Shown: positions 3,218 through 51,699, counted from the first letter of the stretch. The stretch is 64,000 nt of DNA from Octopus bimaculoides (GCF_001194135.2 NC_069003.1:33383853-33447852); one strand, 5' to 3'. The notes: generated from the letters alone by a model not told the origin. Program-made: numbers and translations.

Positions 3218-3252
<35 letters not shown>

Positions 3253-3660: not shown

Positions 3661-3702
<42 letters not shown>

Positions 3703-11397: not shown

Positions 11398-14300
11398 ATT
11401 GTGTGAGAGAGCATGTGTGTGCGTGTGATGTAATGTATGTACTGAACATTAATAATAAGCTTGTGAAGTTGTACATTACTTCATAAAATTAAGTCATTGA
11501 TGATGTACAAACAATGTACATATATATAAAATTTGCAAACAATACAGAAAAATATGGAACAAGTTTATAACAATCAATTGATCAGAATGACAAAACAAAA
11601 GTTTACACAACATAAAAATAAGAATTTGGCAATGCTCTCCAGATCAGTGGTAAACTACTGCTGTCTAACAGGTTTCATGTGGCTGTCATGGCCTTTAAGT
11701 CAACACTGGTTACAGTATAAGGTTCAAACTCAAGATCCATGTGATATTCAGAAATATTTTTTCATGCTCAGAAATGCTGATGCGTGGAAATAAACTACCG
11801 ACATCAGTTGTTAGGTGTCGTCAAGACCACAACATCCTTCAAAACTTGAAGACTTCATGAAATTCGCCAACAGTGTGCCTGATGCCTCTTCTTCCCTCAT
11901 TTTACTTTTAAGTGACTCATTCACTGTCCACTTCCGGCACATTGTTCTAAGTACTGTTCATGCACTTTTAGCTATTTTTGCTGAGGAGTTATTAGCACTC
12001 TTAGAACACTGCAAACATTAATTTCATTAATTAGTTCTTTAGAAATTACAATAATTAAAGACAAAGTAAAGGATTCTGAGACAAATGTAAACTCTGAAAG
12101 AAGAAAGTTTAGTCTTTGACAGTTTTCTGTTACAATCATAACTTTTAAGGAGTTTCCACAAATTTTTGTGACAGGTCAAAATATGGCATCCTGGTATTAT
12201 CAAATACTTGCTGAAAAAGGGTTTAGCTCCCAAGTTCATTCATGCTGACACGGTTGCTACATTAGGGAATGATGCTCCAGCTTTATCAACACTGCAAAAG
12301 CAAGCAGCTGAATTTAAGAGAGGAAGGGAGAGTCTTGAAGATGACCCCAAGGTCTGGACATCGTGCAGCTGTCACCATTTAGGAAAACATTGACTGCGTT
12401 TACTACATTGCATTCACCACATTAGACGATGATGATCCAGCTTTATCAACACTGCAAAGTGGGAAGCTGAATTTAAGAGAAAAAGGGAGAGTCTTGAAGA
12501 TGGCTCAAGGTCTGGACAGCCTGCAACTGCCACCATTTAGGAAAACATTGTGTTCACCACATGGAGATGGATGACAGACAAATCCTCTTCACAGTCTTTC
12601 CAAGTCCTGCCACATTTCACCTGAAACTTTTGATCCACCAAAACAACATCTTTTGGTTGTAGATTTCAATCTGCAAAATTTAACTCATTTGCCAGAATAT
12701 ACAATATTTTTTTCTATCACAACAATATAATAAACAAACAAACAAAACAAAAAAACAGTAAAATGAGAAGAATTTCTTTTCTTTTTTTAAGTAGAGGAGA
12801 TAAGGAAGAAAAAAGCAGGTAGGGTGGAGAGGGGTCAGAGATCATGGAATATTTACCTGGTTCGTTCTCCTCTGAGTCAGCTTCAGGAGTCTGACTGAGG
12901 TAGGCCAATTTGCTGTTCACTAAAATATCATTGATGGATAGTTTTGACGATGATTCAGGGTTGATTAGAAGTACATGACAAACTTTGTTATCTAAAGAAT
13001 TGGGGAAAGAAAAAAGAAAATAGAAAAACAAAACATGAAAAGTAACAGGCTGACAATGTTTTTGTTCTTCACACTAACACTTCTACTCAACTACAACTCC
13101 AATATAATTTTCAATTTCCCTACATCACTTTTCTTCACTCATCCATATTCCATCCCTAAAGGAACTTCAGACCCAAGATTTTGTGTGTTATTCAAAATTG
13201 CATCTGGACTTTCCTATGAAATTTGATATAGACTAAGAAACGAGAACACTGTTTCAAGACAAACAGACAAACATTGATGTTTTTAGATACAGAATACATT
13301 ATTTTCGTAAAGATGAGTGTCGTTAGCAGTGAAGGGTGGAAATGATATCCAGCCACAAAATTAATATAATTTCACATTAAATAACAAATTTAACTGAATT
13401 AAACACAAAAATGTTAAACAACCACAGAATTTACCAATTAATACTGTTCTAGCTTGAAGTTGATCCTGAGCAAGTGCTCCAAATTCCTGCTTTGAAGCTT
13501 CAAAGTCTCTTTCCTCCTGATGAGAAAGAAAATAATCAATTAATTATAGAATCATAACAGTCATTTAACAAGCATTAGTTTTTTTTTTTTCTTTTGAGAG
13601 GTTTGTAAATCATCAAAAGAGCCAAACTTAGAATGGCTGAAATGGGGTTCCTCTGAAGGGTCTTTTGGTGTAATATCACTCGACAGGTTGTGTAACTCAG
13701 AGATCAGAAAATTGGAGGAAAGAATCGTAAAGCCAACCCAACCATTAGGAGACTTAGGGTTAGACCAAGAATGAGATGGTTGGATAATATCAAGAATCTC
13801 TGTTGGTCACGCTTGGAAATTTGGCTGTAAAGTGTGATGGTGGATGCTTCTGGAAGAACCCTATGAGGAAGTGCTTAGACATACATATAAACACACATAC
13901 ATATAAAACAACAATATGAAACTGAAAGTCCTACCTGTGGTGGTATGAGTTGAAACAATGCACAGAGAATAGCCTGAGCAGGATAGTGGGCAACAGAGGT
14001 GGGCAGTTTGGTGATTCGGTCAATAGAAACCCTCTCTGTGTTACCATAATCCACATAGTATACTTCTACTTCTCCCTGTAAAGCAATCATGAAACCAGAT
14101 GGTTGAGAGACAGGTGACAAACAGACAGGCTGATAGAGAAAGGGGCAGGCTAAATTGACAGGCAGACAAACAGGTAGGGAGATGTGAAAAAGGCAGAGTG
14201 ATAGAGAGACAGGAAAATAAATGGAGTGAGGGAGAGAGAAAGAAAGACATGGAGACAGACTAAATACACTGATAGGTAGGTAGAGAGGGATAAACTAAAT

Positions 14301-15289
14301 AGACAGAGAGACTGGCAGACTAGAAGAAAACAGATGTAGATGGAAGGTAAAAACAAGAACAAAGGGAACAACTATATGTGGGGTGTGGGGGAGATGTTAA
14401 GATGAAAATAAAAACCTTTTCTTCATCAATGTCTAAGATAGATGCTCTGTACCAGGCATCGTTGTCGGAGTACTGTGCAACGCAAAATCCACCAATCTGC
14501 AGAGCTTTTATATCCACATGACGTTTCTGGAAATAAAACAAAGTCAAATATATCTTAAAAACACATTGATTGGTAGATTACCAGAATTGATTAAAACATC
14601 CCCAGTATTGTGGCATAAGTTTGTTGACTGATCAGATAGAATGTCTAGTCCCATAGGTCAAGCTATAGATCCCTAAACCCTAAAATAACACTAACCCTGC
14701 TGGTTAATTCTTCTTCGTTTCCTCTAATATTCGTGGCCTCCAATCCATCCTGTACTTCATTGCCTATAAACATATACACCAAACACCTTGTTCCTCTCAG
14801 AAACATATTCATCTTTCTCTCTCTCTCTTTCTCATTTACAGCCCAGGTCTCCTGTCTAGACAGCACTCCAAACTTGACCTTCACACTGAAAGTTGGAATC
14901 TGTGCACATAAAGATTCCACTTTACCTACCACTCACCTATATACCAGCAACCTTGTTCAAAAAATTCGTCATATAGGAAAATTCACCGAAAAAGCATCCA
15001 ATCCACACTGTGAAGTGGTTGGCATTTGGAAAGGCATCCAGCTGCAAAAATCATGCCAAAACTATCACTTAACCTACGTTGGTGTGTTTACGTCCCCATG
15101 ACTTAGTGGTTCAGCAAAAGAGAGCAACAGAGCAAGTACCATGGTTTAAAACAAAAATAAATAAGTACTAGGATCAATTCATTCAACTAAAAGTTCTACA
15201 AGGCGGTGCCCCAGCATGGCCGCAGTCCAATGACTGAAACAAGTAAAAGATAAAAGACATCACAGATGTACATGTAGCATACCATAAAA

Positions 15290-15323
<34 letters not shown>

Positions 15324-18300
15324 TTACCTGACAGTGAAGGTTCAGTTCAGTGTCAATCTCCTGAATGCAACTGCTCTCAAAATGGACATAGAATTGGGCA
15401 GCTGAGTAGATAAAGCTAACATAGACATTGAGTACAGATCTGGAATATATAAAAATAAAAAAAGAAACCAGGGTGTCATCATTGCTGGAGCATAGTAGTA
15501 CCCTGCTGGGCACTGGTAATGGGGCAATGTCATCTGTTTTATATTATTGACCGCCCCCTCCCCCCACATCCTTAGTACCACCATCATCATTGTCAGGCAG
15601 CCCTGAACCAGTTCAGCTTTGACCAGCAGACAACCATCAACATTATTTCGGGTGGTTACCAAGCCGACGAGCTGGCAGGAACATTAGCCCACCAGGTGAA
15701 ATGCTTAGCGGTATTTCGTCTGTCTTCACGTTCTGAGTTCAAATTCCACTGAGGTTGACTTTGCCTTTCATCCTTTTGGGGGGGGGGGGCGATAAATTAA
15801 GTACCAGTTGCATACTGGAGTTGATCTAATCAACTGTGCACCCCACCAAAAAAAAAAAATTTCAGGCCTTGTGCCTAGAGTAGAAAAGATTATCTCAGGT
15901 GGTTATCAATTTTATACAACAAAGAATTGGAGAGAGATTAGGCTGCCATTTTAGCAGCACACAGGCTCCTCCCCCATTGGTTCATTTGTTGTTTAGCCCA
16001 TATCAGCCCCTTATTGTGTGGATAAATCACTAAAAGGCAGTCCAGCTAAGGTCATGCTGTCATGGTCCCTGTTATACAAATTGACCAATGTGTCTTTTTT
16101 ATGTACATGGTGGGGAGTGGTTTGAAGGAGATCTGGGTGCTGGTGCCACATGAATGCACACCCATGCCAGTGTTGCATAAAAGCACCCAGTACACTCTGT
16201 AAAGTGGTTGGCATCCAGCCATAAAACCCCATGCCAAAGCAGACATGGGGCCTGAGCAGCTCCTGTCAAACTGTCCGACCCATACCAGAATGGAAAAACA
16301 GAAATTAAATAATGATGATGATGATGATGATGACTGGCCATTATAACTAGGAAGTCAAATTAATCAAGTAACGAGGTCTCATGTTGTCAGTAATTGTAGG
16401 TGAAGGTGATAGTGGTGGTGGAGTCATGGTGAAATAGCAGTCGTGTGGTAGTGGTTGTGGTACAATGATGACAATTAAGTGATAGAGGAGGAGGCTGAGG
16501 CAGAGGGAAGAGGAGGAGGAAGAATAAAGAGGCAGAAGAGGAAATGTAAACTTACCCGACTGGTAACAATTCAGCATTTTTTATTTCAACTTCCTTAACA
16601 AATGAAATCAAACAAAGAAAAGAGAGACAAGAAATTAATTGTACTTTTAATTAAGATATAAAAAACAACACAATTTTAATACCTAAGAAAGAGGACAAGA
16701 GGGCTTCCGTCAGCGAAATTGACCACAGTTAATATATGGAAAAGAAGAGAAGCAGAAATTCCATAGTGTACTCAATGTGATGTGAGGGAGGGGGGGTGCA
16801 CAAGAAGTGTCGGGGGGGGGTCACAATATGACCGACAGAATTATGAAAATGATTGCATTATAGAGGTAATGCTTCATTAAGTGAGGAATTAAAAATTAAT
16901 AGAAATTCTGAGTTGTGACATAATAATTAGCAGCAAAGTAAATCTAATAACTGGACTCTGCAATATACATTAATTATTCTTTCTCCCATTCACTGTGAAT
17001 AATGTGTGCATGTGTGTATTATGTGTGTGTGTGCGCACATGTGCAATTGGCGAATTGTCTGCACATAAGACTCTTCAGTGGGTGTGCCACAATACTAAAA
17101 ATAATTCAAAGCAATTTTTCATTAGGAGTGCCATTCAGGAAGTCTCACATACCCGTGTCTGAGCAAACATATCAAGATAGAAGATTTATAAAATAAAAGC
17201 CTGCCTACCTTGCCTGTAAATGACACCAAGGACTGTTTCACTGGATACACGATTTCCATCTGTGTAGCACAAGCTCTGTTAACAAACAATACATAATATC
17301 ATTCACATCACTCCATATAATATTATTGTTTATCTTATATAACAGCTGTATGTTATGCTTTAAACAACCCGTACTATGGACACAATTGAAATATTTAACC
17401 CTTTTACTGCAGAAATCAGATATATCCACTCAAATTTTCATTTCCCTTAACTGCAAAAAGCAGTGTTTATATCCCAATCTATCTTTTATTGAGGAATGTC
17501 ATATTGGAAACTACTTTTCTCGGAGTGGTTGGCGTTAGGAAGGGCATCCAGCTGTAGAAACTATGCCAAATCAGATTGGAGCCTAGTGCAGCCATCTGGT
17601 TCACCAGTCCTCAGTCAAATCGTCCAACCCATGCTAGCATGGAAAGCGGACGTTAAGGGGAAAAAAAAAAAAATCACACGAAAAACGAAGACAAATAAAG
17701 CGTACAAACAGCTCCAAGGAGAAGAAAACAAACAAAAACAACATCTTGAATGAAATCTGTTGTAGCCATGAAAATAACAACAGAAGTTTTGATGTGAATT
17801 CAAGTCAAATGTCTGCTGATATACATATCTATAAATTAGAAGAATGCCTAACAAATGAACAAAGAACAGGAAAGTCAATCACGCTTGCCTCTCCTAAATC
17901 CCAGGTATTTGGCCTAAATTTCTATCAAAGCTGGCATTGTTCTTATAACTACAGCATTCACAAACTGTGGTGTTATTGTGGGGCGCAAGAAAAGCTTTAT
18001 GTGTGTATCATGCTAGCATGGAAAGCGGACGTTAAACAATGATGATGATGATATATATATTTTTGTTGCTGCCTAAGCTAAACAGGATAGTTTCTTATTC
18101 TGATGACATCTCAATAGACAAAACAAACAGACATCATCAGCTTTCACTGAAGACTAGAAACGAAAGACACCACTTATATCACAGTGATACTTGTTTACAA
18201 CATGATGGGGAGGTAAAGAGACAATAACACACATAATGGGCATCAACAGGCTTCTTTCAGTTTCCATCTACCAAATCAACTCACAAGGCTTTGGTCATCC

Positions 18301-21300
18301 TAGGTCTTATAGTAGAAGGTTTACTGAGGCAATGTGACTTGCAGAACATACCACTGCTATTTTTTTGAAAGATATTTAACATCATTAGTGGAATAACCAC
18401 GAAATTTAATTGCAGGGTTAATAGCCAAGTGCAGAAGAAAACATTTACAAGTGAGAGGAAGTAATTACCTCGACTGATTAAAGTTAAAAATTAAGTCAAA
18501 GTTATTCATTAAATGGCTCGTTACTTACTGTTCTATCTTAAACATGTCGACCCAAGATCGCACCAGGTCTTGCAGGTTATCTGGAGCTGTCTCTCCGAAC
18601 TGTTTTTCATATGTCTCTCCCAGATTTTTCAACCACAGCCCATTCTGAACAACGATCTAGATTTGGTAAATTGGAAACAAACAAAGATCAATATTAATAT
18701 TAAAAATAAAACAAGTAGTGGAATGAAGTTTGTTTTGTAACCAAAACAAAACTTACTGTAAAATGTGTCTCAAATTACTTCAGCAATTTTAACCTAACCC
18801 TTTTCAACACCAACCAGCTTCAGATTGCTCCTGATTCAATGATTTAAAATCTATAAATTGCTATTTTGAACCAATGCTGCTTCCATTGTTAATAATGAAT
18901 TTCTGTTCAACCTGTTGCTAACATACGACATCAGTGACCTTTCAGTCATTGTTTAACTACATCAGCTGGCAGATGATGTTTGCTTGGCATGAAGTGGCAT
19001 AGATATTTGCTACTGATGAAGCTAATAAACAGAAATCTAGACCCAGTAATTTTACCACCAATGCTGGGGGGCAACCTTCACCTGCAGCTGATATCTTTCC
19101 GTTTTTAACACTATACATCTATAAGAGATATTTTCTCGAGATGAATACTACAGTTTAGAAGGCTTTCAACATATGTACACTTTAAGTTCGCCAATTTTTT
19201 AAAACTAATACTGCTTCTGTTGCTAATAATGAATTTCTATTCAGCTTTCCAGCTTAATGCTGTATCAACCAATTCCTACTTATGGTGCCAGTTCATACTT
19301 GCTACTGGTGAAGCTCAAAAAAAAGCTAAAATCTGGATTTAGCAATGCCACCACCACTACTTGACAATTTCAGCCTGTTGCTGGTATATTTTCTGAATTT
19401 TATACACTATAAATCTATAAGAGGTGCTTTCTCAAGATGAAGAATATAGTTGACAAGGCTTTCAACATTATACAGACTTTGGGTATGATATATACATCAC
19501 TAGTTTGAACTAATACCGTTTCCATTGCAAATAGCAAAAACCATAATAAAATCAAAGTTGCTTCTGTGTGGTCATCAGGCCTCTCGGTGCTCACCTGACC
19601 TGCTAGAAAAGCAACCAAATTTTCAAAATTACACCCTACTTTAATAAGGGAAGGACACATTTGATAACACAGTCCTAGGTTGGAAGGCACTTGAACACAG
19701 CTATTCAATCATGGCTGAATTGGTGCTAAACAACAACAGAAAAAGGGTTATGTTTTTTGATGATTGAGGGCTCACCTACCTGCTGGACCCTTTTCTTTAG
19801 TTCATGTTCATCAATTCCTACAGGATCATCCATTTTATCTGGAAATAATTTACAGTTACTAAGATACCATTCTAAAAATACATTTTCAGTGAAGAATCAA
19901 ATATACATTTTTTTTTTTAGTGATAATAATAATAATGGTTTCAAATTTTGCCACAAGGGCAGCAATTTTGGGGAGGGGATGAGTTGATTGCATCAACCCC
20001 CAGTGTTCAACTGGTACTTGTTCTATCGACGCCGAAAGGATGAAAGGTAAAGTCAACCTCAGCGGAATTTGATCTCAGAATTCAGCAAAAAGAAATCAAT
20101 AGAGTAAGAACCAGGCTTTAAAAAAAAAAAAAAAAAAAAAGTACTGGGGTCGATTCATTTGACTGGAATAAGTCCTCAATGCAGTGCCCCAGCACGGCCA
20201 CAGTCTATTGACTGAAACAAGTGAAGGGAAGGATAAAAGATGTAGGTGTTAGGTATGTATACATGCTATGGGTTGAGTTACCTCCAAATGTGGAGTGTTG
20301 AAGATTTGCTGAAATTACTTACACGGATCAAGACCAAGGCTGATACAAGCATTCTTTGCTGCAGAGTACTGTGCTTCTTGTTCACTGGGGAAGCGGGCTG
20401 AAAGAAGAGGGGTTCAGGTTTGTAATTAATTATATATATACACACACACACACACACACATATATATAGTTGAAAAAAGTAAATAAAGTTGGAAACGGTA
20501 CAGAAGTATATTTTAGAGAATGTTTAATAAAATATTACTGGTTTCGATTAATCTATCTTATCAAATATTAGAAATATTAGAAAGAATTTTGGGAGGAGTC
20601 AAAGAGAAAATATATTTTCTCAAACACAGCTGGCCAAACCATATATATATATATATATGAGGATAGCTGCGTGAAAAAGTGCCACACCCTAACAGTTGAG
20701 GGAACCCGTGGAAGAGGTAGGCCCAGGAAGACCTGGGCTGAGGTGGTGAGGCAAGACCTTCGTACATTGGGCCTCACCGAGGCGATGACTACTGACCGAG
20801 ACCTTTAGAAATGTGCTGTGCGTGAGAAGACCCGGCAAGCCAAGTAAGATCGTTGCCAGTGCCCCTAGACTGGCTCTTGTGCGGGTGGCACATGAGATGC
20901 ACCATTTTGAGCGTGGCCGTTGCCAGNNNNNNNNNNNNNNNNNNNNNNNNNNNNNNNNNNNNNNNNNNNNNNNNNNNNNNNNNNNNNNNNNNNNNNNNNN
21001 NNNNNNNNNNNNNNNNNNNNNNNNNNNNNNNNNNNNNNNNNNNNNNNNNNNNNNNNNNNNNNNNNNNNNNNNNNNNNNNNNNNNNNNNNNNNNNNNNNNN
21101 NNNNNNNNNNNNNNNNNNNNNNNNNNNNNNNNNNNNNNNNNNNNNNNNNNNNNNNNNNNNNNNNNNNNNNNNNNNNNNNNNNNNNNNNNNNNNNNNNNNN
21201 NNNNNNNNNNNNNNNNNNNNNNNNNNNNNNNNNNNNNTTTCGTGCGGGTGACACGTAAAAGCACCCACTACACTCTCTGAGTGGTTGGCGTTAGGAAGGG

Positions 21301-21670
21301 CATCCAGCTGTAGAAACTCTGCCAAATTAGATTGGAGCCTGGTGTTGCCATCCGGTTTCACCAGTCCTCAGTCAAATCGTCCAACCCATGCTAGCATGGA
21401 AAGCGGACGTTAAACGATGATGATGATGATGATGATGTATTTATATATTGTTGTTATTATGCAAAAGTGTTGTAAGTCCAAAATGTTACTTTTTCAGAAA
21501 ACGAAAAAACAGTTTCCTCATTCCATAGCAAAACCGTTGTACTACACTTTGACCAAGTTTTGATATCTTGACATCTGAAACAGCTGGAAATACAATAGTT
21601 TGACCAAAAGAACTGGTTATTGCAAGCAAATTTGGCCATACGACAGTTTAACATAATAGCAATGTGATAT

Positions 21671-41348: not shown

Positions 41349-41554
41349 TACATTATTTACAACAGATGGATTGGTGTCCTCACCTTGTTTGTTGTTATCA
41401 CAACATTTCGGCTGATGTACTCTCCAGCCTCCATTAGTCAAATAAAGGGTTGGGTTCGGAATTCCACCTGATGAAGGCTGGAGAGTACATCAGCCGAAAC
41501 GTTGAGATAACAAACAGGGTCAGGACACCTATCTGCCCATTGTAAATAATGTAC
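41349..41554. repeat. Penelope-like palindrome with hammerhead-ribozyme-like motif
   Basis: Arms 41349-41437 and 41468-41554 are inverted copies; plus arm reads CTGATGA-a-GGCTG...CAGCC-GAAACGTT. Confidence 0.7.
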
Positions 41555-41861
41555 ATAATACCTCATTTTAAAAATACAGGAAAGAAAAACTATACACGTA
41601 GTAGAAATATAAATACATTGTATATTATACAATTTTTGTTGTTTCTATTAAATGCGTTCGTTCTGGTGAAAAACTTGTTTTTACATTTAGAGATATTTAC
41701 AAAGTTTGTACACACATCAAAATATATACAACTTAATTTGAACAAATCAACATATATACATCAACTTGATTTATATATATATATCAACTTAATTTGTACA
41801 ACTAAGTATACGAAGAATGAACAGATGCAAACGAAAATCACACACATAGAGGAAAACGTCC

Positions 41862-43163
41862 TTAATTGTCGTTATATCTGGTGGACGGCATGACACCATA
41901 GGCAAGATCAGTCCGTACCTGCCATCGAAGAGAATGTCTCGGTTTTTGTGAGGGTATCACATAATTATTGGGCACGAAAGTTTTCCGTGGACGGCTTCCA
42001 ATGACGTCGTGTTTGGCAATTTTCTCTTTAATGCTCCACCGAAGGGCGTTGTGATTATTTTCACCGGGAGGCTTGTGCATGTTCCAGTAGTTCTGAAATT
42101 CGTGGAACCTGCTCACGGGGTCTGTCTTTCTGTTTTTCTTCAGCCTCGGCGGTGTTGGAGTAACTATAATTGAGGACCTGAACCGGCTATCACAAGAACT
42201 TTGGGATCTCTGACAGAATTGGCCGTCTCTGTTTGTTATCTCTCTCAGACGATTCTGGTACTCAGCAGGGTCAACGATACTGCTACAGCAACTGCCACAG
42301 ATACTACTTGTGGTACTGATACTACACACAGACTCACTTTTGTCGATATAACGTTTACCATCGGGGCCTTTGCGGGAGACCTTCCTCTTGGTAACATGAG
42401 TGTTTAGCAGTGGAGGTTTTCCGGTGTCGATTTGTGATGGTTTGGGGACGGATTCTTGTGATGAGAGGGAGGAGGAAGATGACGAAGGTGCAATATGACG
42501 AGTCCAAACGTTTTCTTTGTTCTTGGGTTTATCAAAACTATTTACCTGGTTTGGCTGCGGAACGTTTGTTCTGGCGAAAGTTCGAAGGAGATTCTCCTGT
42601 TTTTCATGTTCCGTTTCCGATCGATTAGTCAGTGGCTGTTGAGTGTGTGTGTATTGATGGCTAAGTGTCATTTCCGAGTGACCATCCACCTTATTGGCAC
42701 TGTTGAACAATTGGGAACTTTCAGCTGTGTTCTGGGGCCGATTGTGAGAAACGGTAACAGACGACGGGTCCATGGAATTAACAGAACGACGATCGCCTGT
42801 ATGAGGCAGACACGACTTATCGTCAACGTTCTTGGCAGTTCGTGATGTAAACGATGGAGAAGTTATAGAAATGGGTTCTGGAGGAGACGATGGAGACATT
42901 TTCAAACAAGTGTCAGTTATGTTGTTGAAAGAAGACGAAATCGAAGTGGATTTATCAACATTACGAAGAGAACTTGAGGTTATTTTTTTCACCAAATTCT
43001 TAAGTTCTTTTTGAAATTGACATAAACTACTTTGGTTGATATCTTTGATGCCATACCGAAAGAGTTCCTTTCTTATTTCTTCTTCTGTAAAATCCAACCG
43101 TGACTTACTGACATCGGAAGCCATATTTGTGTTATGATTAGTGACGCCCTCTACAGGTGCCAT
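41862..43163 (-). CDS. HYLS1: Hydrolethalus syndrome protein 1 (centriole/ciliogenesis) homolog, single coding exon; true start may be M14 (ATG at 43124)
   Basis: 433-aa ORF with FTEEEIRKEL N-motif, TKRKVSRKGPDG box and the HYLS1 C-domain (KTDPVSRF...W...PPGE..H..LRW...VPNNYVIPSQKPRHSLRWQVRTDLAYG). Possible acceptor cacctgtag at 43151-43152 ahead of M14. Confidence 0.93.
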   Translation of the reverse strand: MAPVEGVTNHNTNMASDVSKSRLDFTEEEIRKELFRYGIKDINQSSLCQFQKELKNLVKKITSSSLRNVDKSTSISSSFNNITDTCLKMSPSSPPEPISITSPSFTSRTAKNVDDKSCLPHTGDRRSVNSMDPSSVTVSHNRPQNTAESSQLFNSANKVDGHSEMTLSHQYTHTQQPLTNRSETEHEKQENLLRTFARTNVPQPNQVNSFDKPKNKENVWTRHIAPSSSSSSLSSQESVPKPSQIDTGKPPLLNTHVTKRKVSRKGPDGKRYIDKSESVCSISTTSSICGSCCSSIVDPAEYQNRLREITNRDGQFCQRSQSSCDSRFRSSIIVTPTPPRLKKNRKTDPVSRFHEFQNYWNMHKPPGENNHNALRWSIKEKIAKHDVIGSRPRKTFVPNNYVIPSQKPRHSLRWQVRTDLAYGVMPSTRYNDN

Positions 43164-44329
43164 CGAGAAAATAATTCCTGAGCAACTACAGGGGAGATAA
43201 CTATAACCATATTTATTTTTTTTCTTTGATGAATGAGTTGCAGGATTGTTCAGTTGGGCTGTGAGCTTGCAGAACCGTTAGTGTGTCGAACAAAATGCTT
43301 AGTAGCATGTCTTCCGACTTTACGTTCTGAGTTTTAATTCCGCAAAGGGATCTAGTCGGTTTGGCTGCCAGCATTTCAATAATAAAGGTTTACCGAAAGT
43401 TTTAAAATTTGGCACAATAATCTGGTAATTTTGTTTTATGTAAATAAATGCTTGTGTTAATTTATCCAAAAAATCTTATTTAGCTGTTATTTTTAGCACA
43501 CAACATAACCACCTCAATGCCCAATGACAAAAAGAAATGAACAAACAAACATTCAGGCATTCAATATGTAATTAATGCAAATGCGATAAACAACACGTTA
43601 TATGCGATAAGCACATTACAATTTTTGACAGAATGGTTTGGAAGAATTAGATGAAAGGTCTCCGGTACTAAAGTGCTTGTTTCACTTTTTCCAGAAAAAT
43701 GTTTTTGAAAAGTTATAGAGGTTTAAAAGTTTCATAATTTTCACCCAATCCGGAAACAAGATTTGGAAATTGTCCTTTTGTGCGTGGCAGCACGTCTTGT
43801 CAACAGTAAACAAAGCAAATAAATTGGGGTTGGGGTATTGAAATTAATAAAAAAATTAAAAAATTCCTACATCGTAATCTCCGATATCGAATACAGGATT
43901 CTGAAAAAATAAATAAAAAATTACGGAGATGTACTTGCATAGCAAGTGACCTGATCTGAGATGGTGTGCTGGAACGAAAACAATTGCAGCGTGGAAGGTG
44001 TTTATAAGTCAATTAAAATAACACACAAAAACCGTTAGATTCACTTCAACATTTAAATTTAATTTGTCAAAATATTTTCGTCGCTTTGAGACCGCGACCT
44101 GATCACTGACAAAATTCTGTGCTTGGTTCAAAAGTTATAGGGGGTACTCTTCTTGAATAGTACCGTTATAGGATGGGGTGTGTGGGGATTCCGAAGAAAT
44201 ACCGTTTTCTGTCTACAAAAAAGTGATTTAGAATGAATATATCTTAAATGTTGTGTGAGAAAAGAAATATATTCGGCAATTATAAGAGGGAGATAACTAG
44301 TCCACAACTTGTGGTTACCCGTTACCATC

Positions 44330-44650
44330 AACACCGCCGATTTCCAGTGGGTTTTGGTGGAAGTCAAACGTCACGTACTTCGCGGCACAAATTACACCAA
44401 TCTACGACTGTAGTCCACTCATGCACAGTATCTTATCGCAACATATCGCGTAATCATAAACGACCAAAACGATAGACCCACATTTCCCCATCTATAGCGT
44501 CACCACGTGTAGTGAGGCCACATGGTGAATTACAATTTTCGCAAGTGTACAACCACTGAAGAATATTGTCTCTTGATTCGACTAATTGAGTGGTATTCTA
44601 AGATTCCTCCAAGATTGATTCCCGTTTGAGGACATATTTCAGTGTAAGTA
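44330..44650. promoter_or_regulatory. CpG-rich putative bidirectional promoter (HYLS1 on -, unidentified + transcript)
   Basis: Local CpG enrichment, E-box CACGTG at 44504-44509, plus-strand donor cagt|gtaagt at 44644, minus-strand donor-like sites near 44316-44330. Confidence 0.4.
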
Positions 44651-44703
44651 AAGAATGAGAATCTAGTTGTCTCCCTCTTAATTTTTATTTACTTTTCTTA
44701 TCC

Positions 44704-44910
44704 ATGAATTTTTTTGAGGATGACCAAAAAACTATTGGATTCTGCCAGAATCGTGGTGTTCTGCCAACTACTGTGATATATCCACAATGTCGGGGTGAAT
44801 GCGTGTATAGAAAGGACCAACATTTCTGGCGATCTAGAAGGAGTTATACTGTCGCTAAATCTAAAAAAACTGCAGCAGTGTTGGTTTTTCTGTATCGGAC
44901 TTTCAAGGTT
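44704..44910 (+). pseudogene. Truncated Merlin/IS1595-type transposase N-terminus
   Basis: MNFFEDDQKTIGFCQNRGVLPTTVIYPQCRGEC...HFWRSRR resembles the Merlin N-terminal zinc-ribbon region; similarity stops at a SINE insertion. Confidence 0.55.
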
Positions 44911-45395
44911 CTTGTCTTCATAATACACACATTCATCATCATCATCATCATCATTGTCGTTTGACGTCCGTTTTCCATGCTGGCATGGGTTGGACGGTTT
45001 GACTGAGGACTGGCAAGCCAGAAGGCTGCACCAGGCTCCAATCAGATCTGGCAATGTTTCTACAGCTAGATGCCCTTTCTAACGCCAACCGCTCCGAGAG
45101 TAGTGGGTACTTTTTGCGTGCCACCGGCACAGAAGCCAGTCATGTGGCCCTGGCATCGATCACGTGCTTTTTACGTACTACCGGCACGGGAGCCAGTCAA
45201 GAGGCACTGGCATCGACCACGTTCGGATGGTGCATTTTACATGCCACCGGCACTGGAGCCAGTCGGGGGGGGGGGGCACTGGCCACAGCTACGATTTTGG
45301 TTTTACTTGACTTAACAGGTCTTCTCAAGCATATCATATCGCCCGACGTATCAAAGGCCGGACATGCAACACTAGCATCGACCATGTCTGCGATC

Positions 45396-45730
45396 TCACT
45401 TTAGTTGCCAGGTCTCCTCAATCACAGCATATCTCCAAAGGCCTTGGTCTCCTGCCATTGCCTCAATGAAGCCCAGCGTTCGAAGGTCGTGCTTCACCAC
45501 TTCATCCCATGTTTTCCTGGGTCTACCTCTTCTACAGGTTCCTTCCACAGTTAGGGTGTGGCACTTCTTCACACAGTTCTCATCCACACGGAGCTCATGC
45601 CCATACCAGCGTAGTCGTCTCCCTTGCACACCACATCTGATGCTTCTTATGTCCAACTTTTCTCTCAGGGCACTCACACTCTGTCATGTATCCACACTGA
45701 CATTACACATCCAGCAGAGGTAGGAGCNNN
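45396..45730 (-). mobile_element. RTE LINE 3' fragment
   Basis: RRLRWYGHELRVDENCVKKCHTLTVEGTCRRGRPRKTWDEVVKHDLRTLG. Confidence 0.85.
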
Positions 45731-46669
45731 NNNNNNNCACTCTGTCATGTATCCACACTGACATTACACATCCAGCAGAGGTAGGAGCTCTCTGAACTTT
45801 GCCCAGGCTATTCTTATTCTAGCTGCTACACTTTCAGAGCATCCACCCCCACTACAGACTTGGTCATCTAGATAGCAGAAGCTATCAGCTACTTCAAGTT
45901 TTTTTCCCCTGGCATGTGATGGAATCTATTTTCTGTACACACAAAAATTACCTTCCTGATTAACCTTCCTTTGATATTGCTGCACCTTTTATGTGTCCAT
46001 AGCTTACACCGGGTGCATCATATGGAGTTTCTACCTCCGCCTTTTCTACAGATTGAATAGGGACATCTACCTGAAAGGTTTGGTGATTGGTGAACCTTTT
46101 ATAATTCATACTGAAGTTTTACCTAGAGTGTGTATGCTAAAGAAGTTATTTGCGTATACCTTTCTTAATTCCAAAGGAAGAAAATCTTGCGGTGGACTCC
46201 AGCCATGGTTGCTAAGCCCCAAACAACTCTGCGTATATCTGTTGTATTGAATGCACAAGGGAAACATTTATGAAAATGTATACATAAAGAAGTTATGTTT
46301 GCAATTAGCTATATAATTGATAGCAAAATTTATATAAATATAAAATAAAATTAGATCCAGGTTTAGTCACAGGTTGATCAAGTTTGTAAAGTTTTAAACA
46401 GTTTTGCAACAACATAGTGTCTCGATACATTTTAATGAAAATGTGATAGAAAGAAATAATACCACTCTCTTTGGAAGAGAAATTCATTTTTGGTGGTGGT
46501 GAGGGAAGCATTTGTTTTATTATCACAATTTCCACAGCTTTCACCTGTAATCAATTCTTTTGCTAATCTTTTGACTGTTTGGACTTTTTTCCTAATTTTT
46601 AAACTTTGATTTTGTTTCTTTGACTATTAGAACTTTCTTTCCTAATTTTTTTAGAATTTGATTTTCAAG

Positions 46670-47557
46670 ATGGATTGTCCAAGATATGAAATGGCCCAAA
46701 ATTTATCAGAGAAGAATTTCATACAATATCTGAAAGACAATAGAATCATTTCGAATCAGAAGACATGTAGTTGTGGAAAGGAAATGAGCATAAGGCCTTC
46801 TCAGCGTGCCATAGATGGGGTGGTATGGAGGTGCCACAAGTGCAAGAATGCAGTGTCAATCCGTACCAACACTTTCTTGGAGAAGAGTAAGCTTTCTGTG
46901 TACAAAATTTTCAATCTTATTTTCGATTTTATTTTTGAAATGCCGGTAACCAGTTCCATGTCAGCAACCAATGTCAGTAAAGTCACAGCAATACAGTGGT
47001 ACGAGTATTGCCGTGAAATCTGTTCGCAGAAATTATTAAAAGATAAAAAAAAATTAGGTGGCCCGAATCATGTTGTAGAAATAGACGAAGGTTTAATGTT
47101 TCGGAGAAAAAACGAAGCCGGGCGTGTGGTGCATTCATACTGGGTCGTTGGTTTCTATGACAACACCCAGAAAAAAGGATACCTGCAACATGTTGGAGAT
47201 AGAAAAGCAGAGACACTGGAGGCACTCATTATAGACAACGTAGAACCAGGGTCTATAGTGTTTACAGACCAGTGGGCTAGTTACCGGAAGCTAGAAAGCC
47301 TAGGCTACATCCATGGGACTGTGGACCTCACTCAGAATTTTGGGGACCCAGAGAGTGGTGTAGGTGGAAATCAAGTGGAGGCGTACTGGAACCGAATTAA
47401 GAGAAGGCTGAAATACAAATTCACGTCAAGTGGAGACATGCGATGGTCGCACGTCAATGAGGCCATGTACAGAGAACTTTATAATATGACGTACGACCGT
47501 GCATGGGAGAATTACAAGACCTTCCTAAAACACGTGGCAGAAATTTATCCACAATGA
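46670..47557 (+). CDS. Intact Merlin (IS1595/ISXO2-like) DDE transposase, 295 aa
   Basis: Uninterrupted ORF: CxC...WRCxxC zinc ribbon, LGGPNHVVEIDE (D139), IVFTDQWASY (D200), NQVEAYW (E237); acceptor-like sites directly before ATG 46670. Confidence 0.9.
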   Translation: MDCPRYEMAQNLSEKNFIQYLKDNRIISNQKTCSCGKEMSIRPSQRAIDGVVWRCHKCKNAVSIRTNTFLEKSKLSVYKIFNLIFDFIFEMPVTSSMSATNVSKVTAIQWYEYCREICSQKLLKDKKKLGGPNHVVEIDEGLMFRRKNEAGRVVHSYWVVGFYDNTQKKGYLQHVGDRKAETLEALIIDNVEPGSIVFTDQWASYRKLESLGYIHGTVDLTQNFGDPESGVGGNQVEAYWNRIKRRLKYKFTSSGDMRWSHVNEAMYRELYNMTYDRAWENYKTFLKHVAEIYPQ

Positions 47558-48194
47558 TTTTCGAAAGGTATGTAAATGATAATTCTTATAACATATTTCT
47601 GTGTACTTTTTCGGGCATACCTACACAAGTGTGACTCCTTCAATTTTCTTTCATCACAACTATCTGAAAAATGGAAAATGATGGAATATGCATTGTACAC
47701 CCCAATCACAAAAATTTCATTAAAAGACATCCATTTTTCAGCATCGACTTTGTTTCTTCATAACTTCCAGAAAAATGGATACTTTTTAAAAAAATTTTTT
47801 CCTTTTTTTTTTCCACCCCTCCCTCACCATCCTACTCCAGACCGGTTTTGGCCTTTTTTTTTTTTTTTTTTGCACTTCAAAACCATAGCAGAAGCCTTTT
47901 TGGTAAAAAATATTTTTAAAATTGTTAATATTTTCAGAGGAAAAAGTGAGTGATTTAAGGGAGATTTGGCTGTTGTTTCTAGCACATCCTATGACAACCC
48001 TCCTCGTTTCTTTCTCACTCACGAATATGATGTTTTTCAATATTTTTCTCTCCATAAATACATTTATATGCTATGAAAAAAAATTTGAAAAATTGTAATT
48101 CTTTTGGCAACCTCACTCCTTGCTCCTCGTTGTTTCTGATTATAATTTAAAATATTGGAGAGCCTGAGAAGGTCATTGCTAGCAGAAAAGATGA

Positions 48195-48430
48195 ATGTCG
48201 CTGGCAGAAACATTAGCACGCCGGGCGAAATGCTTAGCGATATTTCATCTGCCGCTACGTTCTGAGTTCGAATTCCGCCGAGGTCGACTTTGCCTTTCAT
48301 CCTTTCGGGGTCGATTAAATAAGTACCAGTTACGCACTGGGGTCGATATAAACGACTTAATCCGTTTGTCTGTCCTTGTTTGTCCCCTCTGTATGTAGCC
48401 CCTTGTGGGCAATAAAGAAATAAAAAAAAG
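48195..48430 (+). mobile_element. tRNA-derived SINE family B (tggcagaaacattagcacgccgggcg...); copies at about 15662-15890, 25330-25500(-), 56985-57190(-)
   Basis: Multi-copy with gagttcgaattcc B-box and A-rich tail. Confidence 0.78.
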
Positions 48431-48872
48431 AAATAAGAAAGGATGAATGTAAATGATAATGCATTTTAATAGCATACTTTTCTGTTAGAAGTATTTTTTC
48501 TTACACACATACACAGCTTCTCTTGATTGAGGTGGGGGTGAAAATAAAGTCAGGTGGGGGGCTACTTGTGAAGGTATGCCATTTTTTCATGATAAATAAG
48601 TCTAATACGTTTTTTCCTTAATTTTGCAGGCTATGTCTTCCGCTCCACTTGAGTGCTTCCAGTGTTTTCTGCCTTTCTATCGACACCAAAATTAATTTCT
48701 CTTCCAAAGAGAGAGTGGCGTTATCCCTTTCTATCACATTTTCATTAGAATGTATCAAGACACTATGTTGTCTGTCACAAAACAGTTAAAACTTTTACTA
48801 TCTTGATTGATCTGTGACTAAACCTGGATTTAATATGATTTCATACAAACTTTGCTATCAGTTATATAGATA

Positions 48873-50590
48873 ACGAGCAGTAATGCCCGTTGTTGATCGG
48901 GTAATTACTTTTACTCTTTCTCAGGAGCCATATTCAAAGTGTTATTATATATGTAGATTTACTCCTCCTGTATGTGTATGTTTTATAAGAAAAAACATGT
49001 AATAATTGAAGTCACACGAACTTCTGTTTGTTTATTATATGATGCTAATAAATGAGTTGTATGTGTTATTTTATATATCAATACATGTAATGGTAATTAT
49101 ATAATACACAAGGCTTTGATCAACATGGAGCTGTAAATAAAAGAGAATTGCCTAACGTGCCGCACAGTAGGACTGAACCCAAGGTGACATGATTGGAAAA
49201 CAAGCTTCTAAACCACACAGCCACACCTATAAAGGAGAGATACATTTTGGATAATATACTCTTTGATACAATATGCTTAACAAAAAGATGAGATGTTTAC
49301 GGCAAGAAGACCTTTGATTTTACTATTAACTCGACCAACGCAACAACTAACAATGTTACACCATGCAGGGTGTTCTAGAATTAACTATCTGTTTCAATGA
49401 AATTGAGAAAATTTTTAAAAACTGACAGAATTCTATGTTTATCACCAAAACAAATAGATTTATAAATCTTACGTCAAACTTTTATTGAAAATTTTCAACA
49501 TGTGTGTATCCCTGCATACTTCAAATCTCTCCTTAGCATTGTGAAACACATTTTGAAGCATTTCAGGAGTTAGCTCCTGCATTGCTAACTGAATGTGTTC
49601 TTTAAACTCAGCCAAATGATTGCTCCATCTTTGGGATGGAGGTAAAAGAAAAAAATGATAGCTGCCAAATTGAAAAAAAGCTGTTGTGGACAAATAAGAG
49701 GGGTCCAACAGGAATGAAAATAAAATTATTAAAAAATTATAAAGATTATAAAATTATTAACAAAATTTAAAATTTATNNNNNNNNNNNNNNNNNNNNNNN
49801 NNNNNNNNNNNNNNNNNNNNNNNNNNNNNNNNNNNNNNNNNNNNNNNNNNNNNNNNNNNNNNNNNNNNNNNNNNNNNNCTTTTAAACATGATAAACATAA
49901 ATACAAGTGAGTTTTAAAAAATGCGTCTGATTTCTCTCAAATCATGATTAATTCTGGGACACCCTGTGTTTATTCGTCTGACTAAACGGGGGGGGGGGGA
50001 ACACAGGGAAGGGGACTAATTGCAGGTGGCGAGCATAGCTTCCAGAAGTGGCACGTGGTCAAACTCAAATGGCTGAGTCACAACAGCAGACATGCTAACG
50101 GGCTATGCTGTGTTGCGCGGGATTGGAAATGTGAAACATCAACAAGGTACTTCTGGAGAATGGATGAATGGGTTTGTTGTGCCTTTACCCAGCTGCACAC
50201 ACATGTACATGGCTTGGTAGTGTGCGGGATGGCAACATGAAACATCAACAGGGTGCTGACAAAAATTTTAATGCTCTTTTCATTCCCTCTGCCACATTGG
50301 ACAAAAAGGTTTTCATGAAATATTATACAGTACTTATAATGCATAAGTAGTGTCAATATTTTATTGTCGGAAAATGGCCTAAAAAGTTATGGGCCAAAAT
50401 GCTTTAAAAATGCATTTTATCTGCCCCTGGGCCTGCATTAGGCAAGAAGTTGAAAATATTTTGACCCATGACACTCCATGGGCCCTATCTAATGCATGTG
50501 TAAAATATGAATGAAATCGGTTGAGTACTTCTCAAGTTTTAGGGATTCACACAGACAGACAGACACACATTTTCAGTTTTATATATATTG
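48873..50590 (+). mobile_element. Non-autonomous Helitron-like element splitting the right inverted repeat
   Basis: 5' acgagcagtaatgCCCGttgttgatCGGG hairpin; 3' aaatcggttgagt...(gaca)n...ttttatatatattga tail typical of Lep1/DINE-like rolling-circle elements; no TSD. Confidence 0.55.
49366..49966 (-). mobile_element. Tc1/mariner non-autonomous element
   Basis: TIRs cagggtgttctagaattaa / ttaattctgggacaccctg; transposase C-terminal remnant (LAEFKEHIQLAMQELTPEMLQNV) on minus; contains an N gap. Confidence 0.75.
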
Positions 50591-51699
50591 ATTGCAAACA
50601 TAACTTTTTTATGTATACACCATCTGAACATGATCGTTGCCAAGACACTGACTGGCCCCCGTGCACTAACACTAGTTGTCAAGCAGTGGTTGGCAACTGA
50701 GACACACACACTTAGATGGACATATATCCGTTGTCCATGCTGGCATGTGTTGAACAGTGTGACCAGAGCTGGCCAGTGGGGAGCTGCACCGGACTCCAGT
50801 CTGATTTGGCATGGTTTCTATGGCTAGATACCCTTCCTAATGCCAACCACTTTGCAGAGTGTGGCTGGGTGCTTTTTTGTGGCACCACATAGGAGCTTTT
50901 ACATGGCACTGTCACAAATATTTTATACCATTAGAGGGACTGGTTTTAACATTTCTGCTGTGGAATATGGGACTTCTTGAGTACAGCAAGGTGCCAGGCA
51001 TCTGGGATGCCTATTTTCCTTTCTGTGGCACCAGCAGTAGTGAAGATCACTATCATCCAGCCATCTTGTTCTTGGTCTTATCCTATGTCTCTTACTGATT
51101 GGCTTGGCTTGTGATTCTTTCCTCCAACTTTCTGATCTCTGAGTTACATACCATTGAGTAAATATCACTCCAGAGACCCTTCAGATGAACTCCATTTCAG
51201 CCATCTGTATTTGCTATTGTATCCTTGTGGTTGTTACTCAACATAAATATTAGTTAATGACATGTGGCATAACAAAATAATAATGAAAAAAAAAATTAAT
51301 TAAGCAGTACATATGTCATTTTTAATGAATTGTAAGATTCTACCACAATGTATATATATATAAAAGAGGGATTAGGTTTTCTGCAGGCGAAACTCAACTT
51401 ACAAGAGCAGTAAATGTGTTGTGTTGTTAGGCAAGGTACACATGTTTTAAAGCTAGATGTTTAACATAGAAAGGCCATCCTAAATACACATGGGTTACAG
51501 CTGGGATTAATAAAATAGGCTTACATATTGAAATATAACACAGAGAATGAATAAAGTTTAATATCATATCTCTTTATCTCTCTGTATATATATATATATA
51601 TAATTTTTATGTAAATGAACGAATAACACAAAGACAAAAAGCTAATAAAACATCGCAAAAGACACTAAATACAGTAATAGATTACAATTTAAATCAATT

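Follow-up and report, generated by a model that had tools for sequence, protein, structure and literature searches.

The stretch of Octopus bimaculoides DNA analysed here (64,000 nt, hereafter the window) carries an uninterrupted transposase gene of the Merlin type between long inverted arms that have decayed and been invaded by other elements, and the question is whether this gene is the leftover of a transposon or has become a gene of the host. An intact ORF of 295 codons that lies at the same site in at least three species and is under purifying selection is very probably a transposase gene used by the host. Its orthology, its purifying selection in situ and its immobilisation are shown below.

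Structure of the element

The element is delimited by the following features.

46277–46490, plus strand: long inverted arm on the left of the Merlin element, pairing with 48688–48873 at 81% over 192 nt
48688–48873, minus strand: inner part of the right arm, in which the 19-nt motif recurs at 48693–48711
50592–50619, minus strand: outer end of the right arm, including the right copy of TGTATACA at 50612–50619
46277–46284, no strand: TGTATACA, left copy of a candidate 8-bp target-site duplication; palindrome, identical to the octamer at 50612–50619
46466–46484, plus strand: TCTCTTTGGAAGAGAAATT, a left-arm motif of 19 nt containing the small inverted repeat CTCTT-TGG-AAGAG

Merlin elements have target-site duplications of 8–9 bp, terminal inverted repeats of 24–462 bp and ends of the form 5'-GG...CC-3' (PMC8101967). 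The arms, of about 214 bp, lie within that range. They had been estimated by eye at about 210 bp and 80–85% identity, which agrees with the computed 81%, and the report that the last 29 bp of the right arm reappear at 50591–50619 with one mismatch was reproduced, as 28 of the 29 outermost nucleotides of the left arm pair with that segment. The octamer TGTATACA, present at both ends, may be an 8-bp target-site duplication or the tip of the inverted repeat, and the two are indistinguishable because the octamer is palindromic. The terminal 5'-GG of Merlin is absent at both ends, which start with TGTATACATAAAG, or with TAAAG if the octamer is the duplication. Both outer ends of the element are gone in O. 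sinensis.

The motif TCTCTTTGGAAGAGAAATT was unchanged in the five arm sequences available from three species, including both arms in O. bimaculoides and O. sinensis, and an invariant run as long as this was obtained in only 18 of 20000 column shuffles. Upstream of the O. bimaculoides paralog it recurs with one mismatch. The motif is a candidate protein-binding site.

Open reading frame and encoded protein

46670–47557, plus strand: Merlin/IS1595 transposase-derived ORF of 295 codons (888 nt) that opens with ATG and has zero stops
47300–47377, plus strand: codons 211–236, strand beta5 and the following loop, with the decayed TVNH...HTN signature (dN/dS 0.89), the sole unconstrained part

The encoded protein matched Pfam PF12762, DDE_Tnp_IS1595 (E = 1.5e-13, 51.5 bits, cut-off 27), and had 7675 relatives at E ≤ 0.001. 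The catalytic triad D139/D200/E237 falls in invariant or near-invariant columns of alignments of 21 and 90 sequences and is retained in all three octopod orthologs. Translation, the Pfam match and these alignments confirmed the sequence-only reading of an uninterrupted 888-nt ORF with a full triad. From its N-terminus the protein comprises a zinc-ribbon-like region (CxC...CxxC), a helical region and a DDE core of the RNase H-like type. Its structure was predicted with confidence (pLDDT 88.5), and the modelled RNase H-like fold has matches among retroviral integrases and in the ISCth4 transposase. For O. bimaculoides and for O. sinensis the gene is represented by NCBI annotation models, with two accessions for the one O. 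sinensis protein.

Where Merlins usually have TVNHS..FVDP..G.HTN, between the second D and the E, the window protein has TVDLTQNFGDPESGVGGN. Among 87 distant homologues, H was found at position 220 in 80, N at 219 in 71 and T at 233 in 82, whereas the window protein has D219, L220 and G233; the homologue consensus KRKYNRGR corresponds to RRKNEAGR. In O. sinensis codons 219–225 (7 codons, 21 bp) are missing through an in-frame deletion, so that the spacing from the second D to the E is shorter. The homologue alignments bore out the departures from the Merlin motifs that had been listed (TVNH to TVDL, HTN to GGN, KY.RGR to KNEAGR), and the idea that they point to an altered function was strengthened, as this stretch alone is neutral and has lost seven codons in O. 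sinensis.

Locus and orthology

The exact protein and the HYLS1 gene of the window are both located on O. bimaculoides chromosome CM046623.1. The test set beforehand, an ortholog in another octopus flanked by HYLS1 and the PRDM-like gene and with dN/dS below 1, gave a positive result in O. sinensis, where the locus (L009, CM016881.1) is collinear with window positions 41431–51194 over about 10 kb in 11 blocks and contains the ORF. The same left junction is present in a third, more distant octopod (Logan contigs L002–L005, 1.75-kb contigs), and the L002 alignment crosses it and takes in 150 bp of flank. O. bimaculoides and O. sinensis have in common substitutions confined to the left arm and others confined to the right arm. 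The split of O. bimaculoides from the O. vulgaris-sinensis lineage is dated at about 34 My (PMC10700109).

The ORF is open in all three octopod species, and an ORF absent or disrupted in a sister species, which had been named as evidence against a host gene, was not encountered. Between O. bimaculoides and O. sinensis its dS was 0.13–0.18, against 0.12–0.155 for the adjacent HYLS1, and the protein identity was 90.5%, against 78% for the same neighbour. A protein-level search placed the exact protein at one site only, with one member per species in its 90% cluster, and not among many near-identical copies. The copy had been considered old and probably immobile; this view held, with arms only 81% alike, a right arm that is split and outer ends lost from O. 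sinensis. Loss of mobility and the single-copy state are indicated by the divergence of the arms, the interruption of the right one and the protein-level copy count.

Selection on the open reading frame

The divergence sampled was modest, three species with a total of about 0.26 substitutions per site. Over this tree, pairwise dN/dS ranged from 0.15 to 0.30 with the NG86, LWL85, YN00 and ML estimators (Fisher test for the O. bimaculoides/L002 pair, p = 1e-12), and the terminal branches gave 0.28 (p = 0.017), 0.22 and 0.20, in keeping with the purifying selection that had been suggested from the state of the ORF. Constraint was strongest at amino acids 36–120 (dN/dS 0.05) and 237–295 (0.085), the RNase H-like core was constrained at about 0.18, and amino acids 211–236 reached 0.89. 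Outside the ORF block about 55 gap openings were counted in about 5.7 kb of collinear DNA (about 10 per kb), versus one, in-frame and of 21 bp, inside the ORF. The probability of observing no stop codon under neutrality was 1e-5 to 4e-5 for this tree length.

Nested insertions and assembly gap

48199–48435, plus strand: SINE with a 15-bp target-site duplication at 48184–48198 and 48436–48450; O. sinensis lacks it
48874–50591, minus strand: 1.7-kb Helitron-like insert splitting the right arm, with 5' TC, an A^T site, a weak 3' hairpin and the end CTCG
49366–49966, minus strand: nested Tc1/mariner-like element with inverted ends of about 80 nt, holding an assembly gap at 49778–49878

Comparison of the two species places the arrival of the SINE in the O. 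bimaculoides lineage, after its split from O. sinensis. The SINE had been recognised within the element, and its coordinates, given as 48195–48430, were corrected to 48199–48435. Similar copies are numerous both within the window and at loci L006, L007 and L009.

Helitrons are characterised by a 5'-TC, a 3'-CTRR and a 3' hairpin, and they insert between A and T. The insert at 48874–50591, which is read on the minus strand, has a hairpin of only 4 bp, 12 nt from its 3' end, and it ends in CTCG, not CTRR, so that the label Helitron-like is only partly supported: the splitting of the right arm, the TC and the A/T site stand, and the CTRR end does not. No second copy was found among the sequences compared. 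Its first 376 bp are common to O. sinensis, and the insert is therefore older than the species split.

The element nested within it, at 49366–49966, was taken for a mariner element, a label that is likewise only partly supported: its inverted ends and a mariner-like C-terminal peptide agree with it; its 79-aa ORF, in an interior broken by the assembly gap, gave no match in Pfam, and no TA duplication was found at its borders. The gap lies 2.2 kb 3' of the stop codon, and its flanks are the two ends of one element. The O. sinensis alignment stops short of spanning it. Since the gap is inside the nested element and 2.2 kb past the stop codon, the ORF and the arms are unaffected.

Origin and function of the gene

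The comparative sequence evidence makes it probable that this immobilised Merlin transposase is a domesticated host gene whose ORF has been under selection in situ. A Merlin (IS1595-like) transposon would have inserted between the HYLS1 paralog and the PRDM-like zinc-finger gene before the three octopods separated. It is no longer mobile: the arms have diverged, the right arm is split and, in O. sinensis, the outer ends have disappeared. The transposase gene would have been preserved since through selection at the level of the host. A domesticated DDE transposase is apparently undescribed for Merlin in animals, and no case of animal Merlin domestication with comparative support was found in the literature searched.

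With respect to function, we tentatively favour a protein acting mainly as a sequence-specific DNA-binding factor, with the core as a scaffold of weakened or altered cutting activity. DNA recognition would fall to the zinc-ribbon and helical N-terminal region, the most constrained part, with a site like the 19-nt TCTCTTTGGAAGAGAAATT as its target; this motif is preserved in the two arms of the element and presumably in further family relics. The part of the RNase H-like core would be that of a folded or oligomerisation scaffold, in which the D-D-E residues are kept, the adjacent H220 and T233 signature has been lost and the loop may vary freely. The intact triad in the three orthologs is a counterpoint to weakened cutting.

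It is unlikely that the domesticated protein still cuts DNA under host control, as a nuclease or recombinase acting on relic Merlin ends. The three catalytic residues and the constrained core would suit a cutting enzyme, and the motif preserved in both arms of both species would suit one that acts on the ends, whereas the loss of H220 and T233, the neutral loop that joins strand beta5 to the helix of the catalytic E, seven residues shorter in O. sinensis, and the absence of the first catalytic D from the paralog P0002 argue against it. Doubtful, too, is a partnership of the protein with its own relic ends in octopods, in which it would bind the 19-nt motif in the arms and in relics genome-wide, either as an autoregulated Merlin repressor or as a host-controlled D-D-E nuclease or recombinase, and would be the first such animal gene.

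Conservation could in principle reflect a role of the DNA or RNA and not of the protein, as an enhancer or promoter of HYLS1 or the PRDM-like gene or as a non-coding exon. Two stretches bordering the ORF bear on this reading.

46590–46669, plus strand: conserved leader 5' of the ATG, with an acceptor-like (T)7AG at 46653–54, its TAG forming the in-frame stop 18 nt 5' of the ATG
47558–47640, plus strand: conserved stretch 3' of the stop codon, with a donor-like AAG/GTATGT at 47568; conserved beside the distant paralog as well

About 80 nt on either side of the ORF are better conserved than other non-coding DNA (mismatch in the leader, 3.7% versus O. sinensis and 6.7% versus L002; in adjoining non-coding DNA, 6–9% and 15–19%), conserved acceptor-like and donor-like sites bracket the ORF, and the PRDM-like coding sequence, on the same strand, has the ORF 7.6 kb upstream; together these make a regulatory or exonic role conceivable. 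No RNA structure was supported in the stretch at 47558–47640. Such a role is nevertheless very improbable, since third positions are not spared under constraint at the nucleotide level and the differences at codon positions 1, 2 and 3 numbered 23, 13 and 44, with synonymous sites diverging at the neutral rate; the single indel in the ORF is a multiple of three, and zero stop codons have arisen in three lineages.

That the ORF belongs to an ordinary, recently active autonomous Merlin copy, intact through youth or through selection in its mobile phase, is scarcely credible and contradicted by the three-species orthology: the O. bimaculoides genome is rich in Merlin (191 protein matches; PMC8101967), other family members of 295 aa are intact (e.g. 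P0002, 65% identity), the triad is complete and dN/dS between paralogs is as low as mobile-phase selection yields (about 0.1–0.2), but the ORF has the dS of its host neighbour, which speaks against recent activity, the state of the arms and ends speaks against an active copy, the terminal branches postdating the split still show 0.2–0.28 at a fixed locus on which mobile-phase selection cannot act, and an ORF evolving neutrally would have stayed open with a probability of about 1e-5, indels not yet included.

Comparison with known systems

The window gene shares with Merlin and the IS1595-IS1016 group (PF12762) the transposase domain, the DDE triad, a length of about 295 aa, long arms and a possible 8-bp target-site duplication (PMC8101967). 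It differs in lacking the terminal 5'-GG, in its decayed TVNH/HTN signature, in having lost its mobility and become fixed at an orthologous site across several species, and in its four-cysteine N-terminal motif, which Merlins are reported to lack (PMC8101967).

The paralog LOC106875185 (P0002; O. bimaculoides CM046604.1, adjoining COMMD1) agrees with the window gene in family, length (295 aa without indel), C-terminus, the conserved stretch 3' of the stop codon and the left-arm motif. It is distinguished by its identity of 65%, saturated dS, different locus, and replacement of the first catalytic D (EVKK in place of the EIDE of the window protein). Its right arm was not found, nor was an O. 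sinensis ortholog among annotated genes.

In Stentor, Symbiodinium and Perkinsus, Merlin-related ORFs without terminal inverted repeats or target-site duplications have been suggested as possible domestications (PMC8101967). They are likewise Merlin-derived and preserved without sign of mobility. Intact ORFs and lost ends are the basis of those proposals; the octopus gene adds orthology, branch dN/dS, indel statistics and an animal host.

Domesticated DDE transposases of animals include SETMAR (mariner), PGBD5 (piggyBac), THAP9 (P element), HARBI1/NAIF1 (Harbinger), CENP-B/POGZ/TIGD (pogo) and ZBED (hAT), and such proteins have repeatedly become DNA-binding proteins or recombinases of the host, as in RAG1, CENP-B, SETMAR and PGBD5. 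The window gene shares with them a single syntenic ortholog, purifying selection, decayed or lost terminal repeats, a DNA-binding region under the strongest constraint and a catalytic core retained but altered. In contrast to SETMAR, PGBD5, THAP9 and the others, it is Merlin-derived, restricted to octopods as far as tested and not fused to a host domain, and both of its own arms are recognisable. The locus is a cleaner case than usual, in which decayed arms, nested inserts and orthologs in three species are all visible, and it shows a host keeping the zinc-ribbon and helical region, the core fold and the DDE triad while dropping the TVNH/HTN signature. It adds a lineage-restricted candidate regulator to the TE-rich genomes of cephalopods, with a candidate binding motif that is directly testable.

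ORF and predicted protein

The ORF at 46670-47557 (+) belongs to an old, immobile Merlin element; it occupies an orthologous position in at least three octopod species, where purifying selection maintains it. It comprises 888 nt (295 codons and a stop), starts with ATG, with an in-frame TAG 18 nt upstream, and has no internal stop, confirming the uninterrupted frame recognized in the sequence-only reading. The protein matched Pfam PF12762 (DDE_Tnp_IS1595, the Merlin/IS1595 transposase domain; E=1.5e-13), and the D139/D200/E237 triad proposed in the same reading occupies invariant or near-invariant columns when the protein is aligned with 20 or with 89 relatives.

The AlphaFold2 model was confident (mean pLDDT 88.5, pTM 0.85) and showed, in this order, a three-stranded N-terminal unit with C33, C35, C55 and C58, a helical region and an RNase H-like core, in which strand beta1 carries D139, D200 sits where beta4 ends and the next helix bears E237. 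The closest solved folds were retroviral integrase cores and the ISCth4 transposase; a PDB sequence search gave no match, and thus no sequence-related solved structure. Of 87 distant Merlin-like homologues, 74-86 keep the cysteines of the CxC...CxxC motif (window 46766-46843). The Zn_Tnp_IS1595 zinc finger is absent from Merlins according to PMC8101967, and Pfam PF12760 was not detected in the ORF protein. An Rfam scan of the window gave no match and a promoter/terminator scan, whose models are bacterial while the host is a eukaryote, no enrichment.

Arms, termini and nested inserts

The features surrounding the ORF are the following.

46277-46490, left arm, pairing with 48688-48873 (81% over 192 nt)
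48199-48435, SINE with a 15-bp target duplication
48874-50591, 1.7-kb insert; in minus-strand reading a TC start, a site between A and T, a 4-bp hairpin and a CTCG end
49366-49966, element of about 600 bp with inverted ends of about 80 nt flanking a gap, nested within the 1.7-kb insert
49778-49878, assembly gap within the element of about 600 bp, 2.2 kb past the ORF stop codon
50591-50619, outer end of the right arm, pairing with the outer 29 nt of the left arm (28/29)

The inverted repeats of about 210 bp, estimated by eye as roughly 80-85% identical, and the reappearance of their last 29 bp with one mismatch were both borne out by these pairings, which place the insert at 48874-50591 within a split right arm. 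The split of the right arm was confirmed; the label Helitron-like is supported in part, by the TC start and the A/T site but not by the CTCG end, and the hairpin has only 4 bp. The SINE was present, with its limits moved from 48195-48430. The assembly gap, lying inside the nested element and well beyond the stop codon, has no bearing on the ORF or the arms. A search of the window and of all the loci compared found no further copy of either arm, of the Helitron-like insert or of the nested, mariner-like element. Other runs of N are located at 1734-2117, 3073-3801 and 20689-21361, with microsatellite-like sequence on their flanks.

The outermost octamer at each side is TGTATACA, which, being a palindrome, may represent the 8-bp target duplication that a Merlin insertion would leave and not the repeat tip. 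Whether the octamer is taken as duplication or as repeat tip, the element lacks the terminal GG that PMC8101967 gives for Merlin. At 46139-46160, 150 bp upstream of the element, AAAGAAGTTATTTGCGTATAC resembles the left terminus at 46287-46305 (AAAGAAGTTATGTTTGCAAT); it also occurs in the Logan contig L002 and could derive from an older end or reflect target preference.

Genomic setting and orthologous loci

An exact-protein look-up placed the ORF at a single position of O. bimaculoides GCA_001194135.2 (CM046623.1), between a HYLS1_C gene (minus strand; protein of 433 aa) and a PRDM-like zinc-finger gene (plus strand). The HYLS1 loci L006-L008, from O. vulgaris, O. bimaculoides and Argonauta, lack a Merlin ORF. 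These were rejected as the empty orthologous site because they represent another HYLS1 gene, some 65 kb distant, with amine oxidase and TGF-beta flanks. Chromosome CM046623.1 thus carries two HYLS1 genes (window 41865-43163 (-); L007 10001-11373), and the copy outside the window is the one syntenic with O. vulgaris.

The 90% protein cluster had three members: the window protein, O. sinensis LOC118767687 (one sequence under two XP accessions) and a Logan protein carried on four contigs of about 1.75 kb (SRR11869384, 85, 90 and 91; L002-L005). The true orthologous locus was reached via the O. sinensis protein P0031. This locus (L009, CM016881.1) is collinear with window 41431-51194 in eleven blocks, which take in the HYLS1 copy, intergenic DNA, left arm, ORF, right arm and right flank, and establishes a syntenic ortholog. 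The window HYLS1 gene has its ortholog at L009 779-2125 (rc), intact and unannotated.

The Helitron-like insert is represented in the collinear blocks by its first 376 bp and is therefore older than the O. bimaculoides / O. sinensis split; the SINE is missing from L009 and was thus inserted in the O. bimaculoides lineage. At the O. sinensis locus, about 1.2 kb of other sequence, with an unrelated Merlin relic in it, stands in place of the outer left end; no outer right end was found, and an insertion of about 290 bp lies about 100 bp upstream of the ATG. The alignment stops at 49249 and restarts at 50661, i.e. it does not span the assembly gap. Left arms and right arms each show arm-specific substitutions common to both species, indicating that the arms had diverged from each other before the split.

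The alignment of L002 crosses the left end of the element and reaches 150 bp into the flank, so that the third species shares the insertion. The non-coding mismatch to O. bimaculoides is about 0.19 for this species and 0.06-0.09 for O. sinensis, which marks the third species as a more distant octopod. Since the divergence between the arms (19%) resembles this non-coding divergence, insertion may have occurred not long before the O. bimaculoides / L002 split.

Selection on the ORF

The ORF is open in all three species. Pairwise dN/dS was calculated by NG86, LWL85, YN00 and ML, all pairs on a common 864 nt and the O. bimaculoides / L002 pair also on the full ORF. NG86 gave dS well above non-coding divergence, and the other three methods lower dS with dN/dS of 0.2-0.3; the whole range is given. 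Changes on terminal branches were assigned by an odd-one-out rule among the three species.

Table. Divergence of the ORF by species pair and by terminal branch.
O. bimaculoides / O. sinensis: dN 0.03; dS 0.13-0.18; dN/dS 0.18-0.25
O. bimaculoides / L002: dN 0.04-0.06; dS 0.20-0.30; dN/dS 0.16-0.30
O. sinensis / L002: dN 0.05-0.07; dS 0.25-0.38; dN/dS 0.15-0.25
O. bimaculoides branch: 7 synonymous, 8 non-synonymous; pN/pS 0.28, p=0.017
O. sinensis branch: 16 synonymous, 14 non-synonymous; pN/pS 0.22
L002 branch: 30 synonymous, 24 non-synonymous; pN/pS 0.20

The purifying selection proposed from the intact frame was supported by the pairwise values (0.15-0.30), the branch values and the indel and stop statistics. 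The value for the O. bimaculoides branch indicates that the window copy itself is still constrained. The adjacent, fast-evolving HYLS1 copy gave a dS of 0.12-0.155 and a dN/dS of 0.45-0.67 between O. bimaculoides and O. sinensis; the synonymous divergence of the ORF thus equals that of its host neighbour, while its protein is better conserved (90.5% vs 78% identity). Outside the ORF block, the collinear blocks (HYLS1 copy included) amount to about 5.7 kb and show about 55 gap openings; the 885-nt ORF shows a single one, where O. sinensis has lost 21 bp in frame. A stop would result from about 4.4-5.6% of random substitutions in the ORF, and the chance that none arose over a three-species tree length of about 0.26 substitutions/site is about 1e-5 to 4e-5.

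Selection from the mobile phase cannot explain this constraint, which has acted on a fixed locus since the species split. Conservation as a nucleotide-level element rather than as a protein would not have spared third codon positions; the differences at positions 1, 2 and 3 number 23, 13 and 44.

Constraint by region and decayed signature

Table. Regional dN/dS, O. bimaculoides vs L002.
Residues 36-120, cysteine motif and helical region: 0.05
Residues 121-210, core strands 1-4: about 0.18
Residues 211-236, strand beta5 and the loop preceding the E-bearing helix: 0.89
Residues 237-295, C-terminal helices: 0.085

The unconstrained residues 211-236, also of lowest confidence in the AlphaFold2 model, hold the family signature TVNHS..FVDP..G.HTN, in which, among 87 distant homologues, H220 is kept in 80, N219 in 71, T233 in 82 and F224 in 83. 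The stretch reads TVDLTQNFGDPESGVGGN in the window protein and TENLAQKSVDTESGVCKN in L002, and seven of its residues are deleted in O. sinensis. Replacement of H220, N219 and T233 in the window protein agrees with the departure from the TVNH and HTN motifs seen in the sequence-only reading, and the H-to-L change, common to O. bimaculoides and L002, is older than the divergence of these two. All three orthologs retain the D-D-E residues.

The ORF is very probably a domesticated DDE transposase gene. Its predicted product may act chiefly as a sequence-specific DNA-binding protein, with a catalytic pocket that may be relaxed or altered.

The 19-nt arm motif and ORF flanks

A 19-nt motif, TCTCTTTGGAAGAGAAATT, is invariant across five arm sequences, namely the left and right arms in O. 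bimaculoides, the left and right arms in O. sinensis and the L002 left arm. Its sites are listed below.

46466-46484, window, left arm
48693-48711 (rc), window, right arm
9504-9521 and 11523-11540, L009 (O. sinensis)
350-367, L002
9830-9847, L001, locus of the paralog P0002

The arms are otherwise 8-19% diverged, and an equally long invariant run appeared in only 18 of 20000 column shuffles. The motif includes the inverted repeat CTCTT-TGG-AAGAG, and a copy with a single mismatch lies 170 bp before the ATG of the distant paralog. Candidate roles for the motif are a promoter element or a binding site, possibly one recognised by the putative DNA-binding product.

About 80 nt 5' of the ATG and about 83 nt 3' of the stop are conserved above the surrounding non-coding DNA, and contain an acceptor-like (T)7AG (acceptor at 46654) and a donor-like AAG|GTATGT (donor at 47568). 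The post-stop stretch (47558-47640) is about 85% conserved at the paralog too (L001 10888-10975), where synonymous sites are saturated; RNA structure in it was rejected (-7.7 kcal/mol, no covariation). O. sinensis has two transcript accessions with one identical intronless coding sequence, which, judging from annotation practice, would fit spliced untranslated exons.

Merlin family context

Table. Related proteins of O. bimaculoides.
P0002 (LOC106875185): 65% identical, exactly 295 aa, no indel; on another chromosome, adjoining COMMD1; first catalytic D lost
P0003: 72% identical over a fragment
P0009: 42% identical

Between the window copy and P0002, dS has reached saturation; diversification of the family therefore long preceded insertion of the window copy, as expected of a once-mobile lineage. 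A 297-codon family member at L010 245-1138 (Logan SRR27666058; 56% identical), from an organism richer in GC and CpG, has the TVNHS/DDE signature complete. A variant, P0007, shows in-frame loss of the first-D segment and the VNHS..FVDP segment, which parallels the O. sinensis deletion.

Divergent Merlin-family relics (26-39% aa identity) were located in L009 at 8428-8637 (+), 5344-5655 (-) and 3871-4044 (-), and in L001 at 14191-14482 and 17892-18478. Those of L009 have no counterpart in the orthologous O. bimaculoides DNA, indicating that other Merlin families were active after the split in the O. sinensis lineage.

The literature search turned up neither a description of this gene nor one of any Merlin-derived host gene in an animal. 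In PMC8101967, 191 Merlin protein hits are reported for O. bimaculoides, and domestication is proposed solely for some protist Merlin-like ORFs. The Merlin superfamily is an unusual source for an animal host gene.
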